Below the pieces are notes generated by a model, which worked only from the letters and a program-made list of their open reading frames with translations, did not search any database and was not told the origin of the DNA. 64,000 nucleotides of DNA from Guillardia theta CCMP2712. Lineage: Eukaryota > Protista > Cryptophyta. Position numbers and translations under genes: made by a program. Below, piece by piece: positions 10,300 to 18,962 of the stretch (positions within the stretch are counted from its first letter, which is position 1; each line of letters starts with the position of its first letter). The DNA lies in NCBI RefSeq assembly GCF_000315625.1, contig NW_005434672.1, forward strand, positions 426,006 to 490,005. Reading direction: 5' to 3'.

Positions 10300-12520
10300 C
10301 ACAAGATGAACACCGTGGCTCACCAAATTGGCGATGAAGGCGGCAGAAGTCTCATGTTGACTTCCTCGCTGCATGTTTGTCTTCTCTCCCTCAAGAACTT
10401 CTCCGACGGCGTGCAACAACCTCTCTCTCAAAAGACCTGCATCAACCTCACTCGCCCCTCTTGCCCCTCCCTCCTCCCTCTCTGATTCTCAATCGTGCTG
10501 CCTCCTCGTGCTGCCTCCTCCTCCTCCTCGTGTGCTCCTCCTTCCTCTTCCTCCTCTTCCTCCTCCTCCTGCTCGTGCTCTTCCTCCCTCTTCCTTCTCC
10601 TCCCCCTCCTCGTCATTCTTCTTCCTCCTCCATAACCCCCTCCTCGCTCTCCCCCCCTGCTTCTCCTTACATCTCATCTCCACCTCAACCCCAAGTAACA
10701 AGAGGATAGAATCGTCTCACCCATGTCCTTGGCTCGGCTCTCAGGGTCAGTTGCTCTCAGCAGGGGGGACGTGCATCCTAACGAGCTGGGGGGGAGAGGA
10801 TCGATGTACCCAGCAGAGGAGAAGTACATCTCCCCCCGAGATAAAAACTTCCGTCCCCCTCCCCTCTCTCCTCCCCAGCTTCCATTCTCCTTCGTAGACG
10901 CCCCCGTAGTCATATCTCATCGCTCCCTTCCCATGCCGCAGGTCCAGGAAGAACTCCCCGCTGTAGATGCCGTTTCCTCCCGATAAGTGTACTCTACATC
11001 GCTCACGTACTTTCCCATCCCCTCCCTCCTCCCGCACACCCACTCCCCCTCGTAGCTGCTCCCCGCACTCCATGCTGTGGAGTCGGTATGGCAAGTCCAC
11101 AACCCCTTCCCATGGTACATGTCCTCATCAAACTCCCCAACGTAGCTCTCGAAGGGTGTGAGTACGAAGGGGAGTTCGTGCATGGACCGGCAGCACCCCA
11201 CACCCGGGGAGCTTCGCGCTGACCCCGTAGCACTTCGCTTCCTCGCTCTCGGGGTCCAGCCCAGGAGGATGAAGACCGTAGAGGAGCTTGCCGTATCCTC
11301 CAAACTTCCCCGCTACAAACTCCCCCTCGTACTTGAGATTCCTTTCTGCCAATTCCAGCGTCCCCCTCCCGTAGTAGAGCGACTGGTAGAACTCCCCCGA
11401 GTAGCTCTCCTTCTCCGTGACTCGGCATTCTGGCCCGTGCAGTATCCCATTCCGGTGCACGCCTGACTCGAGCACCTTCCCGTTCCTCCGCTCGAAGGAA
11501 AAGGACGCGGAATCGAACGTTGTTGTGCAGACTTTCCCGTCCCTGAATGTGAAGCTTTCCTCGCCATGCGACTCATTCATCCTGAACTCTCCTTCGTACA
11601 CATCACCGTTGGCAAACGTTCGTCTCCCCACGCATTTCCCATGCTCGAAGGTCGCCTCCAACATGCCTCCATCGGCAAACAGCACGTTCCCTTTACCGTC
11701 GGGCACACCAGCGTTGAAAGACCCGTAATACACATCACCATCAGTCAGCGAAGCCAGTCCTTTCCCTGCTCCCTCCTCTCCTCTCGACCCCAACTTGTCC
11801 TTTCCTCCCTCCGCAAACGTTCCTTCGTACCAGTCCCCCCACCTGCTGCGGTATACTCCCTTCCCATGAAAGTGATCGCGCTGCCAGACTCCTTGGTACT
11901 CGTCACCATCGGGAAACAGCAGCACCCCCTCCCCTTCCAGCCTCCCCTTCCTCACGCTGCCGCTGTACACGCTGCCATTCTTGAACTCATGGTTCGAGAT
12001 GATGGTCGTGTCCTTCTGCCACTTCTCCTCAAACGACGACCCGTTGGGAAACCAGTACTTGCCCTTGCCGTGGAACATATCCTTGGAGTGCTGCCCTTGG
12101 TACTTGGATCCGTTGGCGAAGAAGTAGGTTCCCTTGATAAAGTTTCCCTTAGTCTCGGACTCTCTCTTCCCATAGCTCATCGTCCCCTCATACCGATCGC
12201 CGGTGTCATAATACATAATTCTCTTTCCGGTCGGATGGAACAGGTGAAACTGCCCTTGCCATCGACCAATACATTTCTATCAAAATTATGCCCGTTCATG
12301 GCTTTAGGTCAGTGTCCTTGTTGCCTTACTAGTATGTGATAACTGAAGATACAGGTATTTATTGGCTGATCTATAGAGCGAATCATACTGCAGCTTGTGG
12401 TAAACTGTTTCCAGGTATACTTGCTGCAAGTGATACCTATACATTCACCTTCTTTTCGTCAAGCTCTTGCCGGAGAGGTCAAAGCCAATATGAACGATTC
12501 CGCAAGCTTTTCTGCTAGCG
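10300..12520 (-). CDS. MORN-repeat protein (multi-exon; both ends uncertain)
   Basis: Many G-x-Y-x-G-x-W/F-xx-G/D-xx-HG-x-G units (GDEYQGVWQRDHFHGKG, GGVYEGEWKLGRREGRG). A GTAAG..TAG intron at 12329-12277 shows the gene continues upstream. Confidence 0.85.
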
Positions 12521-12914: not shown

Positions 12915-15900
12915 TTACCACCAACGATTCACACCACAAATCACCGAGGCTCCCAAGTGCACCTCCTTGCTGCCTGGGTGCAGCTCCATAGCCTTGAGGA
13001 TTGCTTCCATCCCACCGAGCCTCGCTATCTTGACCTTGTTGTCGTCATTGACGGCGAGCTTCAGTTAGTGCCCAGCAGCCCTGCTCTTGCACCTCCTTGC
13101 TGCCTGGGTGCAGCTCCATAGCCTTGAGGATTGCTTCCATCCCACCGAGCCTCGCTATCTTGACCATGTTGTCGGCATTGACGGCGAGGTTCAGTAGTGC
13201 CCCGCAGCCCTGCTCTTGCACCTCCTTGCTGCCTGGGTGCAGCTCCATAGCCTTGAGGATTGCTTCCATCCCACCGAGCCTCGCTATCTTGACCATGTTG
13301 TCGTCATTGCCAGCGAGCTTCAGCAGTGCCCCGCAGCCCTGCTCTTGCATCTCCTTGCTGCCTGGGTGCAGCTCCATAGCCTTGAGGATTGCTTCCATCC
13401 CACCGAGCCTCGCTATCTTGACCATGTTGTCGGCATTGCCAGCGAGGTTCAGTAGTGCCCCGCAGCCCTGCTCTTGCACCTCCTTGCTGCCTGGGTGCAG
13501 CTCCATAGCCTTGAGGATTGCTTCCATCCCACCGAGCCTCGCTATCTTGACCATGTTGTCGTCATTGAAGGCGAGGTTCAGTAGTGCCCAGCAGCCCTGC
13601 TCTTGCACCTCCTTGCTGCCTGGGTGCAGCTCCATAGCCTTGAGGATTGCTTCCATCCCACCGAGCCTCGCTATCTTGACCTTGTTGTCGGCATTGAGGG
13701 CAAGGTTCCCCAGTGCCCAGCAGCCCTGCTCTTGCACCTCCTTGCTGCCTGGGTGCAGCTCCATAGCCTTGAGGATTGCTTCCATCCCACCGAGCCTCGC
13801 TATCTTGACCATGTTGTCGTCATTGACGGCGAGCTTCAGTTAGTGCCCAGCAGCCGTGCTGTTGCACCTCCTTGCTGCCTGGGTGCAGCTCCATAGCCTT
13901 GAGGATTGCTTCCATCCCACCGAGCCTCGCTATCTTGACCATGTTGTCGGCATTGAAGGCGAGGTTCAGTAGTGCCCAGCAGCCCTGCTCTTGCACCTCC
14001 TTGCTGCCTGGGTGCAGCTCCATAGCCTTGAGGATTGCTTCCATCCCACCGAGCCTCGCTATCTTGACCATGTTGTCGGCATTGCCAGCGAGGTTCCCCA
14101 GTGCCCCGCAGCCGTGCTCTTGCATCTTCTTGCTGCCTGGGTGCAGCTCCATAGCCTTGAGGATTGCTTCCATCCCACCGAGCCTCGCTATCTTGACCAT
14201 GTTGTCGTCATTGCCAGCGAGGTTCAGCAGTGCCAGCAGCCCTGCTCTTGCACCTCCTTGCTGCCTGGGTGCAGCTCCATAGCCTTGAGGATTGCTTCCA
14301 TCCCACCGAGCCTCGCTATCTTGACCATGTTGTCGGCATTGAAGGCGAGGTTCAGTAGTGCCCAGCAGCCCTGCTCTTGCACCTCCTTGCTGCCTGGGTG
14401 CAGCTCCATAGCCTTGAGGATTGCTTCCATCCCACCGAGCCTCGCTATCTTGACCATGTTGTCGGCATTGAGGGCAAGGTTCAGTAGTGCCCAGCAGCCC
14501 TGCTCTTGCACCTCCTTGCTGCCTGGGTGCAGCTCCATAGCCTTGAGGATTGCTTCCATCCCACCGAGCCTCGCTATCTTGACCTTGTTGTCGTCATTGC
14601 CAGCGAGCTTCCCCAGTGCCCCGCAGCCCTTCTCTTGCACCTCCTTGCTGCCTGGGGCCAGCTCCATAGCCTTGAGGATTGCTTCCATCCCACCGAGCCT
14701 CGCTATCTTGACCATGTTGTCGGCATTGACGGCGAGGTTCAGCAGTGCCCCGCAGCCGTGCTGTTGCACCTCCTTGCTGCCTGGGTGCAGCTCCATAGCC
14801 TTGAGGATTGCTTCCATCCCACCGAGCCTCGCTATCTTGACCATGTTGTCGGCATTGCCAGCGAGGTTCAGCAGCGCCCCGCAGCCCTGCTCTTGCACCT
14901 CCTTGCTGCCTGGGTGCAGCTCCATAGCCTTGAGGATTGCTTCCATCCCACCGAGCTCGCTATCTTGACCATGTGTCGGCATTGCCAGCGAGGTTCCCCA
15001 GTGCCCAGCAGCCGCGCTCTTGCACCTCCTTGCTGCCTGGGTGCAGCTCCATAGCCTTGAGGATTGCTTCCATCCCACCGAGCCTCGCTATCTTGACCAT
15101 GTTGTCGTCATTGCCAGCGAGCTTCCCCAGTGCCCCGCAGCCCTTCTCTTGCACCTCCTTGCTGCCTGGGTGCAGCTCCATAGCCTTGAGGATTGCTTCC
15201 ATCCCACCGAGCCTCGCTATCTTGACCATGTTGTCGGCATTGAAGGCGAGGTTCAGTAGTGCCCAGCAGCCCTGCTCTTGCACCTCCTTGCTGCCTGGGT
15301 GCAGCTCCATAGCCTTGAGGATTGCTTCCATCCCACCGAGCCTCGCTATCTTGACCATGTTGTCGGCATTGACGGCGAGGTTCAGCAGTGCCCCGCAGCC
15401 GTGCTGTTGCACCTCCTTGCTGCCTGGGTGCAGCTCCATAGCCTTGAGGATTGCTTCCATCCCACCGAGCCTGGCTATCTTGACCATGTTGTCGTCATTG
15501 CCAGCGAGGTTCAGCAGCGCCCCGCAGCCGCGCTCTTGCACCTCCTTGCTGCCTGGGTGCAGCTCCATAGCCTTGAGGATTGCTTCCATCCCACCGAGCC
15601 TCGCTATCTTGACCATGTTGTCGGCATTGCCAGCGAGGTTCCCCAGTGCCCCGCAGCCCTGCTCTTGCACCTCCTTGCTGCCTGGGTGCAGCTCCATAGC
15701 CTTGAGGATTGCTTCCATCCCACCGAGCCTCGCTATCTTGACCATGTTGTCGTCATTGCCAGCGAGCTTCAGCAGTGCCCGCAACCCTGCTGTTGCACCT
15801 CCTTGCTGCCTGGGTGCAGCTCCATAGCCTTGAGGAATGCTTCCTTCCCACCGAACCCTGCTATCTTGACCATGTTGTCCGCATTGCCAGCGAGGTTCAG

Positions 15901-18333
15901 TAGTGCCCAGCAGCCCTTCTCTTGCACCTCCTTGCTGCCTGGGTGCAGCTCCATAGCCTTGAGGATTGCTTCCATCCCACCGAGCCTCGCTATCTTGACC
16001 TTGTTGTCGGCATTGAGGGCAAGGTTCAGTAGTGCCCAGCAGCCGTGCTCTTGCACCTCCTTGCTGCCTGGGTGCAGCTCCATAGCCTTGAGGATTGCTT
16101 CCATCCCACCGAGCCTCGCTATCTTGACCATGTTGTCGTCATTGAGGGCAAGGTTCCCCAGTGCCCAGCAGCCGCAAAATTGCACCTCCTTGCTGCCTGG
16201 GTGCAGCTCCATAGCCTTGAGGATTGCTTCCATCCCACCGAGCCTCGCTATCTTGACCATGTTGTCGGCATTGACGGCGAGGTTCAGCAGTGCCCCGCAG
16301 CCGTGCTGTTGCACCTCCTTGCTGCCTGGGTGCAGCTCCATAGCCTTGAGGATTGCTTCCATCCCACCGAGCCTCGCTATCTTGACCATGTTGTCGTCAT
16401 TGCCAGCGAGCTTCCCCAGTGCCCCGCAGCCCTTCTCTTGCACCTCCTTGCTGCCTGGGTGCAGCTCCATAGCCTTGAGGATTGCTTCCATCCCACCGAG
16501 CCTCGCTATCTTGACCTTGTTGTCGTCACTGCCAGCGATGAACAGTAGTGCCCCGCAGCCCTGCTCTTGCACCTCCTTGCTGCCTGGGTGCAGCTCCATA
16601 GCCTTGAGGATTGCTTCCATCCCACCGAGCCTCGCTATCTTGACCATGTTGTCGTCATTGCCAGCGAGGTTCAGTAGTGCCCCGCAGCCCTGCTCTTGCA
16701 CCTCCTTGCTGCCTGGGTGCAGCTCCATAGCCTTGAGGATTGCTTCCATCCCACCGAGCCTCGCTATCTTGACCTTGTTGTCGTCATTGAAGGCAAGGTT
16801 CCCCAGTGCCCCGCAGCCCTGCTCTTGCACCTCCTTGCTGCCTGGGTGCAGCTCCATAGCCTTGAGGATTGCTTCCATCCCACCGAGCCTCGCTATCTTG
16901 ACCTTGTTGTCGTCATTGCCAGCGAGGTTCAGTAGTGCCCCGCAGCCCTGCTCTTGCACCTCCTTGCTGCCTGGGTGCAGCTCCATAGCCTTGAGGATTG
17001 CTTCCATCCCACCGAGCCTCGCTATCTTGACTTTGTTGTCGGCATTGAGGGCAAGGTTCAGCAGCGCCCCGCAGCCGTGCTCTTGCACCTCCTTGCTGCC
17101 TGGGTGCAGCTCCATAGCCTTGAGGATTGCTTCCATCCCACCGAGCCTCGCTATCTTGACCATGTTGTCGGCATTGACGGCAAGAATTCGCATTGTCTCA
17201 CACCCTTGCTTTTGAATACCTTCATGTTTACGATGCTTTTTCATCTCGTGTACCAGAGCAGCTACGTCGTGGTGGAGTTTTATGGATGCGAACAGGACTG
17301 CTGCTAGAATTATTGCCAAAAAACAAAGTATTGCTGCCGAAAAAGCATTGCTTTTTACAAAGCATTGCTGCCCAGAAAGCCTAGCTGCCAGCCTGGCTAC
17401 CAGCAGGACCAAAACAAACCACAAAGTTTGAGTCCACGATCCCAGCAAAAGCAGATATGACCGGATGCTCAATGGATTCCTCGCTTGTTCAAGCTCGCCC
17501 TCCTCGCCCATGATCTGCTTCAAATGCACCACATCCGGGAACCCGCTTTTCTCAAGCAAAGAGGTTTCCTTCGGATCGATGATATTCTTTGAAGTAGAAA
17601 CTACCTCGAACGTGCTAAGAGGGGGTAGAAGCACTTCATACTCGCTATCGGTACCCTGAAAAAGACTGAAGCTCTCGATCCAGTAGCCATGCAAGACATC
17701 GATTATGAAGATGGTGCGCGGTCCTGCGTTGATCCCGCAGAAGTTCACACGTGTCATCACCTGTGGCTCCTTACTTGTGGATTTGTACTCATACCACATC
17801 AGTTTTCGCCCTGTCTTGAAATGGCTGGTCGGATTGTGATGGTCTGGCGAGGGATAGACCCACTTGACTCCCCGTCGAGCTTCACCCTTGTACTTGAACC
17901 TTTGGGGCAACGCTCTCAGGGCCTCTCGTAAAAACTTGATGTAGGGCAGACACGCACCAAGTGCCGGTGAGATACTGCGACCACCTCCCACCTGGCGACG
18001 ATCACGGTTGAACATCTCACGGTTGATGATTGCAAAGACCGGAGGGTCACTCAGCGTGTATACGTGGATGCACACGGCAAAGTCGATGCGGTAAGATTGG
18101 GGCAGGTTGAAGTGTTGCGGGTCGTGAAGCACCTCCTGCCACTCAGAGCTCTTGGACTTCACCACAAACGTCAAGATGTCCATGTCGATCTCAGGAAAGC
18201 GCTCCAGAGGTTGTACAGCATCCAAGAGCGTGGCAGGAAGCTCAGTCTCTTCCATCGCCTTCGACAGGGATCGCATCCAGCCATAGTCAATGCTTGGCGC
18301 CCCGTCGGATTCTGCGAAGTCAGGCGTGGCCAT
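12915..18333 (-). CDS. Mono-ADP-ribosyltransferase (R-S-E class) - hydrophobic hairpin - ~33 hypervariable armadillo repeats; array carries frameshifts (real or assembly error)
   Basis: ART motifs: IHVYT, RRGV, KSTS, SEYEVLLPPLSTFEV. Two hydrophobic stretches at ~17270-17460. Then 43-aa ARM units EVQxxGCxALxxLAxNxDNxVKIARLGGMEAILKAMELHPGSK. Single-base indels at ~15780, ~14975, ~14957, ~14233, ~13840 and ~13065. Confidence 0.88.
12957..17215 (-). repeat. Coding tandem array of ~33 x 129-bp units
   Basis: Constant block (gcctcgctatcttgacc...gctccatagccttgaggattgcttccatcccacc) recurs every 129 bp. For example, equivalent positions 13061 and 13836 are 775 bp apart = 6 units + 1 inserted base. 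Confidence 0.97.
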
Positions 18334-18962
18334 CGTTTCCTGTCGCAAAGAATCACGTCTGTCAGATGGTGCAGGGTGTTGAGCTGACAGCTGCTACCTT
18401 GTATCATGCGCATAGCCACCGAGCAGCAAGCGGCATCAGCTTGCTCTCAAGATACTTGAACCAGAATCTCACAAGCCGCGTCAGAATCTCAGCACCAACA
18501 ATCACAAGAGAACGATCGAAACATTCCACAGTAACCAGCTTCAAAAGAGTCTCAACACTTAGCTCGTCATCGAAACTATCCAAAAGACCCAAGAAAAATC
18601 TCAATACTCTTGTAGGATCATATTTCCCAATCATATTCAAACTATCATATTCGAACTCCCAACGCTCATTTCAACAAGATCAACAAGATCAACATAAAAA
18701 TTCGCACGATCATGTACTCCAAGACTCTTGAGAAAGACAACATCCTCCTCATACTTGTAAGTAGACTACTACCTCCGAGGCTTCACTCCGCATCAACCAG
18801 GCCATGGATGCAGTGCGCTGGCGTCTTATCCACCAAAAAGCACCGCAACTGACTCGACTACCGGTGTATTGGATACATCCGATAAAAACTACCCCACCCC
18901 TAAAGAGTCAATCGACCCTTCAACTACAACCCCGACAACTCGACCACCCATGCTTGGGTGGT

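Follow-up and report, generated by a model that had tools for sequence, protein, structure and literature searches.

Why would one protein carry about 33 nearly identical repeats that differ from each other at only a few positions? The question is raised by a gene of the cryptophyte alga Guillardia theta CCMP2712, located on the minus strand of contig NW_005434672.1 (assembly GCF_000315625.1). We analysed 64,000 nucleotides of this contig (positions 426,006 to 490,005), called the window below, and all positions are those of the window unless another contig is named. The gene starts with an ATG at 18331-18333, opening the protein MATPDFAESDG..., and its last repeat is followed by a TAA stop at 12915-12917. 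With a probability of roughly 65% we read it as a coding minisatellite of ~33 assembled units inside an expressed protein, which joins an ADP-ribosyltransferase (ART) domain, a membrane hairpin and an array of armadillo (ARM) repeats, the units sharing one scaffold and varying in the residues of their groove. A first-pass annotation of the same DNA had proposed that the variation is confined to one face of the third ARM helix and works as a recognition code, and our analysis follows up on these proposals.

Tandem Repeats Finder (TRF) reports a period of 129 bp with 32.8 copies and 93% matches at 12958-17181. We cut this array into units anchored on their constant part and obtained 32 full 129-bp units, u01 to u32, on the minus strand from 17163 down to 13038; u01, for example, has its constant part at 17083-17163 and its cassette at 17035-17082. 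A shortened unit, u33, follows at 12915-13037, having only the first two helices (H1 and H2) and a 14-aa tail before the stop codon, as seen in the translation and in a contig of the data set X6. One unit encodes one ARM repeat of 43 amino acids. Its nucleotides 1-81, covering H1, H2 and the start of the third helix H3, are constant, and nucleotides 82-129 (codons 28-43) make up a variable H3 cassette. The identity between units, averaged over the 32 units, is 94% at the nucleotide level and 90% at the amino acid level. Units with a broken frame were read one by one, with gaps or X at the breaks, rather than being joined into a single sequence, and no unit has a stop in the ARM frame.

The proposal that these units are ARM repeats is borne out by sequence profiles, by solved structures and by structure prediction. 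The array matches the Pfam Arm family (PF00514) with E=1.9e-27 and 94.8 bits against a cut-off of 20.6, and the ARM_LRRK2 profile with E=7e-35. The best sequence match in the PDB is the engineered consensus ARM protein OR497 (4rv1, E=9e-41), followed by Vac8 (E=4e-30). In the single-sequence model by AlphaFold2 (AF2), which has a pLDDT of 79, helices of ~6-9, 11 and 15 residues, i.e. H1, H2 and H3, recur every 43 residues, with H3 occupying unit positions 24-38. Foldseek relates this model to ARM proteins with a probability of 1.0.

The differences among the units are concentrated at eight codons. The observed states are E26/Q5/F1 at codon 28, Q18/H7/K4/R2/C1 at codon 29, G18/W12 at codon 32, L23/G9 at codon 35, N24/K7/F1 at codon 36, G16/V6/L5/F5 at codon 39, A17/D15 at codon 41 and M25/K7 at codon 1, the numbers being units; they are exactly the residue alternatives listed by the first-pass annotation. 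Codons 2-27 (H1-H2) are nearly invariant, synonymous sites included, with a synonymous diversity (piS) of 0.007 and a non-synonymous diversity (piN) of 0.009, and a stretch of 78 nucleotides is identical in 26 of the 32 units. Polymorphic columns that are not singletons number 3 of 81 in H1-H2 versus 15 of 48 in H3 (Fisher p=2.3e-5). Singletons are evenly spread (8 of 81 and 9 of 48 columns, not significant), which indicates that the mutation input is similar along the unit and that the difference lies in what is retained. Hypermutation of the cassette was considered as the main cause and was rejected, as the cassette shows no significant enrichment of singletons.

Positions 28, 29, 32, 35, 36 and 39 fall on one side of the helical wheel (R=0.75; permutation p=0.004 among H3 positions), and the invariant positions 30, 31, 33, 34, 37 and 38 lie opposite to this stripe, so the helical-face periodicity noticed earlier is real. 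The fixed codons had also been described as almost invariant at their synonymous sites. This is true of codons 2-27, where the near-zero piS supports the proposed concerted evolution of the scaffold, but not of H3, in which synonymous variants are common at A33 (GCA/GCG), L34 (CTG/CTA), L37 (CTC/CTT) and A38 (GCC/GCT). The scaffold codons of H3 have a piS of 0.23 and a piN of 0.006, and the face codons have a piN of 0.26.

The 32 units contain 25 distinct H3 cassettes and 24 distinct seven-residue signatures. In a four-gamete check within the 48-nt cassette, all four combinations were seen for 50 of the 66 pairs of biallelic sites. Neighbouring cassette sites stay linked, e.g. GCT at codon 38 always occurs with GGC at codon 39. 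There are no one-step intermediates between CTG and GGG, and the G and W states of codon 32 stand at 18:12. The diversity of the cassettes is thus combinatorial, drawn from a few old states per position, and the pattern points to short-tract exchange between units rather than to ongoing point mutation. A simple higher-order repeat structure was rejected, since identical units recur without a fixed order.

The variable positions can be placed on the ARM fold through the engineered proteins. HMMER aligns EVQ-x-x-GC-x-AL-x-x-LA-x-N of the array with EVQKEAARALANIASG of the engineered protein OR497 and with the matching stretch of Vac8. We also used the consensus of the designed binders, NEQILQEALWAL, taken from primers quoted in PMC11228518. 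In a Trp-anchored alignment Glu30 and Trp33 of the designed binder correspond to our codons 29 and 32, and Leu32 and Thr34 to C31 and A33, and the variable codons 28/29/32/35/36/39 align with the pocket residues 29/30/33/36/37/40. In the designed ARM binder Glu30 and Trp33 are surface-exposed in the peptide-binding site, Leu32 and Thr34 are buried, and conserved Asn residues on the concave side hold the backbone of the peptide (PMC4756613). Residues 29, 30 and 33 are described as pocket residues, and Gly is natural at some pocket positions (PMC11228518). The claim that the variation is confined to one face of H3 is therefore upheld at the level of sequence comparison, with the face codons aligned to exposed pocket residues and the interleaved codons to the buried Leu32 and Thr34. 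A more specific claim equated codons 32 and 36 with the W-x3-N ligand-binding residues of importin-type helices. The spacing of W32-x3-N36 does agree with it, but only 10 of the 32 units have both residues; other combinations include G32/N36 in 13 units, G32/K36 in 4 and W32/K36 in 2.

We then asked how selection acts on this face. Over codons 28-43 as a whole the synonymous divergence (dS) is 0.167 and the non-synonymous divergence (dN) is 0.142, a ratio of 0.85. The first-pass annotation had proposed diversifying selection on the groove and had named the comparison between synonymous and non-synonymous variation as its own test; as the two are comparable in H3, the proposal is not established by it. 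Face positions can also be defined a priori from the designed ARM binders, whose residues 29, 30, 33, 36, 37, 40 and 41 are positions 28, 29, 32, 35, 36, 39 and 40 here. For this set the piN over the synonymous diversity of H3 is 1.95 (bootstrap interval 0.89-6.6), against a piN/piS of 0.21 in the remainder of H3, and the a-priori face of four paralogous arrays has a piN/piS of 1.0-1.5. These face ratios fit anything from neutral evolution to positive selection. What is clear is a strong constraint on the scaffold next to face positions that are either unconstrained or positively selected, and diversifying selection on the latter is plausible.

The same pattern is found elsewhere in the genome, where related ARM arrays give matches on about 43 contigs. 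We extracted four paralogous arrays for the comparison, three of them clustered at 124-167 kb of contig C118 (L022:4037-7783, L023:7651-9999 and L024:2715-8136) and one on contig C10 (L026:3658-6366). Their units are 43 aa long and 74-87% identical within an array. In all four the most variable positions are 1, 28, 29, 32, 35, 36, 39 and 41, and in all four the synonymous diversity is lower in H1-H2 (0.04-0.18) than in H3 (0.17-0.35), so that together with the focal gene five arrays have a lower piS in H1-H2 than in H3. The focal array is an extreme case of this family-wide pattern, the repetition of which argues against chance or artefact. Two irregularities were seen among the related arrays. 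In L025:3938-7210 two ARM units are out of frame without a stop before the frame returns, and around 6172-6281 of L024 two long frames overlap. Such frame slips reflect either systematic mis-assembly or frequent decay of the arrays.

The gene is transcribed and spliced. Reads and contigs were fitted to 15700-18400, a stretch that contains one of six frame-breaking indels discussed below, the one in u11. A contig of X6, 1488 nt in length, matches 17152-18341 without any difference and then continues with the sequence at 18400 onward. The 58 nt that it skips (18340-18397, minus strand) have GT-AG ends (GTAGCAG...GCGACAG) and end 6 nt upstream of the ATG, and hence represent a spliced intron in the 5' untranslated region (UTR), so X6 holds RNA of the ART-ARM gene. 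A contig of another data set, X2, is unspliced across 18340-18397, and X2 thus behaves as genomic DNA. A second X6 contig links the constant region to the tail of u33, with a loose end at 15794. This link, together with a depth of the constant region in X6 that is 41 times that of the unique 5' part, indicates that the whole array is transcribed. Independent contigs of X1 (DNA) and X6 (RNA) reproduce several cassettes with zero mismatches and at about single-copy depth, so the variation is not an invention of the assembly. We also observed three 1-nt indels relative to the window in X2, a 2011 run with a depth of 2-5. They lie at 17411, 17426 and 17621, in the unique, ART-coding part of the gene, where X1 and X6 match the window, and are most likely read errors at low depth.

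Ahead of the array the protein carries an enzymatic domain. The ART domain spans aa 60-254 (17572-18156, minus strand; Pfam PF01129, E=9.4e-9, 35.3 bits versus a cut-off of 22.3). Its R-S-ExE motif consists of R154 (17872-17874), S185-T-S187 (17773-17781) and E229-x-E231, which is E229-Y-E231 in the focal protein (17641-17649). Among 12 relatives there is no variation at R154 and S185 and almost none at S187 and E231. The motif is intact and the enzymatic activity is putative; a sequence search gave no solved structure related to this domain. A database fragment of 192 aa (P0001) starts at the ATG of the gene and is 100% identical to it. The look-up of contigs encoding P0001 in the database gave none, and a search with the 854-aa open frame of the gene did not return a match to itself.

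Two hydrophobic segments follow the ART domain, at aa ~293-320 (17374-17457, with a peak of 2.0 in a 19-residue Kyte-Doolittle window) and aa ~331-352 (17278-17343, peak 2.9), and probably form a membrane hairpin. No signal-like segment was found at the N-terminus, the Kyte-Doolittle maximum of the first 60 aa being 0.57. Such a pair of segments, in a protein lacking a signal peptide, would place both the ART domain and the ARM array on the cytosolic side. A degenerate capping repeat (...GIQKQGCETMRILAVNADN) precedes the array at 17164-17277, and the AF2 model is helical from its first residues. The coding stretch spanning the hydrophobic segments also contains a weak 17-bp tandem repeat at 17325-17389 (3.8 copies, 72% matches), which is probably a chance effect of composition. 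The neighbouring frame on the minus strand, 11128-12216, encodes a MORN-repeat protein of 362 aa (Pfam PF02493, E=2e-20).

Both modules of the protein occur in other combinations. An exhaustive profile search gave 422 relatives of the ART domain, whose C-terminal partners include ANK, TPR or ARM repeats, kinase with EGF, and PARP. Examples of the relatives joined to ankyrin or TPR repeats, to a protein kinase with EGF repeats, or to PARP catalytic domains are P0004, P0027, P0033, P0053, P0054, P0079 and P0094. The ART family behaves as a mobile enzymatic module with many partners. ARM arrays of the same subfamily are joined in other data sets to SH3, U-box, TIR and BTB domains. The N-terminal domain of the C118 and C10 paralogues has no Pfam match. 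It carries the motifs ...HLACHG... and ...NLCWSG..., and language-model features group it with CHAT (caspase-like) proteases with a score of 0.95, which we take as a lead only. No Pfam match to a NACHT or NB-ARC domain was found in the 859-aa frame of the focal gene or in the N-termini of the paralogues. Membership among the NOD-like receptors (NLRs) or STAND proteins was considered and ruled out, as the protein has no recognizable central nucleotide-binding domain.

Alignment of the units revealed six 1-nt indels on the minus strand that interrupt the reading frame. In u11 one nucleotide is missing from the G run at codon 32 (15780-15781), and this deletion leads to a first in-frame stop at 15769-15771, which leaves an open frame of 854 aa with 11 units. 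Two more deletions lie at the junction of u17 and u18 (14974/14973) and in codon 6 of u18 (14957/14956), and the three together bring the array back to the frame of the ATG. A deletion in u23 (14236/14235) is in the same alignment column as that of u11. An inserted A in u26 (13841, CACT[A]ACTG) restores the ATG frame, and the same insertion is found in u32 (13066), the cassettes of u26 and u32 being identical from codon 30 onward. Short homopolymers harbour four of the six indels, a pair of which share one G run.

We estimated the copy number from the depth of two strings of the constant part, at window positions 15942-15999 and 17084-17161, whose exact letters occur only 29 and 26 times in the window. 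In X1 (DNA) the depth is 43x single-copy for 29 assembled copies; in X6 (RNA) it is 41x for 26 assembled copies, and 8.2x for 6. Unique cassettes are near 1x in both data sets. As the depth of the constant region is ~1.5x the assembled copy number, the array is probably collapsed or mis-assembled, and the real one may comprise 40 units or more. Over 15700-17163 neither X1 nor X6 was reported to show an indel relative to the window, although an informative contig over the u11 site was not verified, and a search for short database fragments spanning the u11 break gave none. On balance we lean slightly towards the six indels being errors.

These indels are among the observations that weigh against our reading of the locus, because they interrupt the frame after unit 11 and, if real, leave just 11 units translated. 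In its global superhelix the single-sequence model agrees poorly with known structures of ARM proteins (TM score 0.37-0.40), and the assignment of the variable residues to the concave face is supported by homology and helical periodicity, not by model coordinates. Positive selection is not demonstrated, with a ratio of 0.85 over the region, a face interval that includes 1, and paralogues at about 1.0-1.5. The raw RNA reads (X20) are few and 95 of 101 are partial fits, all in one direction, so they are uninformative on strand and level. The anatomy, the pattern of variation and its recurrence in the paralogues, the constraint on the scaffold, and transcription with splicing are observed directly, whereas the binding of ligands, a selection for diversity and the function of the ART domain are what we infer; the variation data come from one assembly.

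Four other explanations have to be weighed with these points in mind. If all indels are real, the gene could be truncated or decaying, so that the protein would end after the ART domain, the anchor and 11 units, and the remaining 22 units would stay untranslated and be kept uniform by concerted evolution alone. The number of indels and the early stop at 15769-15771 agree with this, the inserted A, which u26 and u32 share within identical cassettes, looks like a genuine variant that has been copied, and neither X1 nor X6 was reported to differ over 15700-17163. However, that last comparison lacks a verified informative contig at the u11 site, most of the indels are in homopolymers, two of them in one G run of a kind prone to sequencing compression, frame slips also affect further arrays of the family in the same assembly, and the excess depth in both DNA and RNA makes mis-assembly probable. 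Moreover, all units are free of stops in the ARM frame, and those beyond the eleventh are no richer in scaffold changes than those before. We regard truncation as doubtful, with a substantial chance of being right nonetheless. The face could also drift neutrally: the groove positions would be unconstrained, gene conversion would homogenise the identical H1-H2 and stall at the mismatched cassette, whose diversity would thereby maintain itself, and there would be no recognition code. This would account for the face piN of 0.26 being about equal to the neighbouring synonymous diversity of 0.23, for the ratios of the paralogues, and for the presence of old polymorphisms in similar proportions of the synonymous sites of the scaffold and the non-synonymous sites of the face. 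Yet drift would be expected to give more states than the small alphabets that we see at intermediate frequency, such as G/W at codon 32, and CTG/GGG without one-step intermediates; the same positions are variable in five arrays and coincide with ligand-contact residues of ARM binders, and the focal face ratio reaches 1.95. We consider purely neutral drift rather unlikely.

The excess depth that speaks for a collapsed array might also mean that the units themselves are chimeric or consensus-smoothed products of collapsed reads, as 43x and 41x stand against 29 and 26 assembled copies. But independent short-read contigs of DNA and RNA reproduce cassettes without mismatch and at about single-copy depth, an assembly error would not sort the changes by helical face, with all those of amino acids on one side and all the synonymous ones opposite, and four more arrays have the same pattern, so an artefact of this kind is hardly credible. 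It is very unlikely, too, that the array reads a nucleic acid or another polymer in the manner of TALE or PUF repeats, each unit taking one base. The great length of the array, its uniform modules and its few variable residues would suit such a function; the fold and the sequence, however, are those of peptide-binding ARM proteins (Vac8, beta-catenin, importin and the designed binders), among the variable residues are G, L, V, F and W, not the polar pairs that read bases, and the protein appears to be anchored in a membrane.

If the gene encodes, as we prefer, an anchored ART protein with a long ARM array of one scaffold and varied groove residues, the following mechanism could account for the observations. 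Unequal crossing-over and short-tract gene conversion would keep the 81 nt of H1-H2 and the start of H3 practically identical, and the 48-nt H3 cassette would hold old polymorphisms that are shuffled among the units. Purifying selection would keep the presumably buried G30, C31, A33, L34, L37, A38, N40, D42 and N43, which vary only synonymously. Only the groove-facing positions 28, 29, 32, 35, 36 and 39, plus 41 and position 1 in the next turn, would tolerate changes of amino acid, and selection may even favour them there. The outcome would be a long solenoid with a shared scaffold, whose repeats differ from each other where an extended ligand would be contacted. The groove may bind extended peptide or protein ligands, a reshuffling of units may alter the specificity, and the ART domain may serve as the output by modifying the bound partner or a downstream target.

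Such a combination of homogenised repeats and a variable surface resembles known systems. Fungal NOD-like receptors, e.g. HET-E and HET-D of Podospora and the NWD family, carry WD40, ANK and TPR/HEAT repeats with high internal conservation; their units are >85% identical and evolve in concert, and positively selected positions map to the binding surface (PMC4986451). To count as highly conserved internally in that survey, repeats have to be at least 85% identical over 100 aa or more (PMC4986451), and the focal array has 90% amino acid and 94% nucleotide identity over 32 units. Its variable positions would likewise lie on the ligand-binding surface, to judge from the homology to designed binders and the helical periodicity. 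Both systems share the shuffling of repeats, the few variable sites on a binding surface, and varied N-terminal effectors in multigene families, and both find their best structural template in an engineered protein built of consensus repeats. They differ in that our array is of the armadillo type, which is not reported in PMC4986451, is algal and comes without a NACHT or NB-ARC match, and in that positive selection and repeat-number polymorphism were shown in Podospora whereas our data are from one assembly. The zinc-finger array of PRDM9 is similar in its near-identical coding minisatellite units, concerted evolution and variation at ligand-contacting residues, but it has the C2H2 fold, reads DNA, consists of 84-bp units and is under well-documented positive selection (PMC8925151).

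Designed armadillo repeat proteins (PMC4756613, PMC11228518) and OR497 have identical internal repeats and take their specificity from aligning H3 positions. Gly occupies pocket positions in the focal array, which the designers had remarked of natural ARM proteins. Unlike the designed proteins the focal array is natural and far longer, its units have 43 rather than 42 aa, and the W-x3-N pair is present in less than a third of its units. By sequence the array belongs to the same ARM subfamily as Vac8, importin-alpha and beta-catenin (PDB 5xjg, 7ycj and others). These proteins have 10-12 divergent repeats that are conserved between species, no enzymatic domain and no homogenisation of repeats, in which they differ from the focal protein. 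The structures of Vac8 include the bound partners Nvj1, Atg13 and Vac17. Vac8 is anchored to the membrane by lipidation. TAL effector repeats are 33-35 aa long and form two helices, with variable positions 12 and 13 that follow a one-base DNA code. The likeness to them consists in a uniform scaffold, in the small number of residues that vary within a unit and in a read-out that would proceed module by module along a polymer. The focal units are of another fold, having 43 aa in three helices, with 7-8 variable positions, and the fold points to peptides; membership among the TAL effector repeats was accordingly dismissed. The first-pass annotation had suggested a code like that of the repeat-variable diresidues of TAL effectors (TALE-RVD-like). 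With 2-5 states at each of these 7-8 positions and 24 signatures in 32 units such a code is not established, and the comparison is an analogy only. Full-text literature searches returned no report of such armadillo arrays or of an array family of this kind in cryptophytes. What sets this case apart from the known pattern is the armadillo fold, the algal lineage, the lack of a NOD domain and the attached ART.

We speculate, at low probability, that these genes form a NOD-less family of innate recognition proteins in cryptophytes, in which a self-homogenising ARM array acts as a re-programmable peptide reader that gates an ART domain here and a CHAT-like protease or a TIR domain in relatives. 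If so, each type of unit would specify a pocket and unequal exchange would reshuffle the pockets, making the array a natural counterpart of the designed modular armadillo binders. Should the groove positions indeed set the specificity, the array would amount to a library, made by nature, of armadillo pockets that share one fixed scaffold. This is the goal of designed modular peptide binders, and the natural cassettes would lend themselves to direct testing. The combination of concerted evolution with a hypervariable binding face, known from fungal NLR repeats, PRDM9 and TAL effectors, would then extend to the armadillo fold, to an alga and to NOD-less proteins with conflict-type enzymatic domains, and innate recognition would become testable in a little-studied lineage of eukaryotes.

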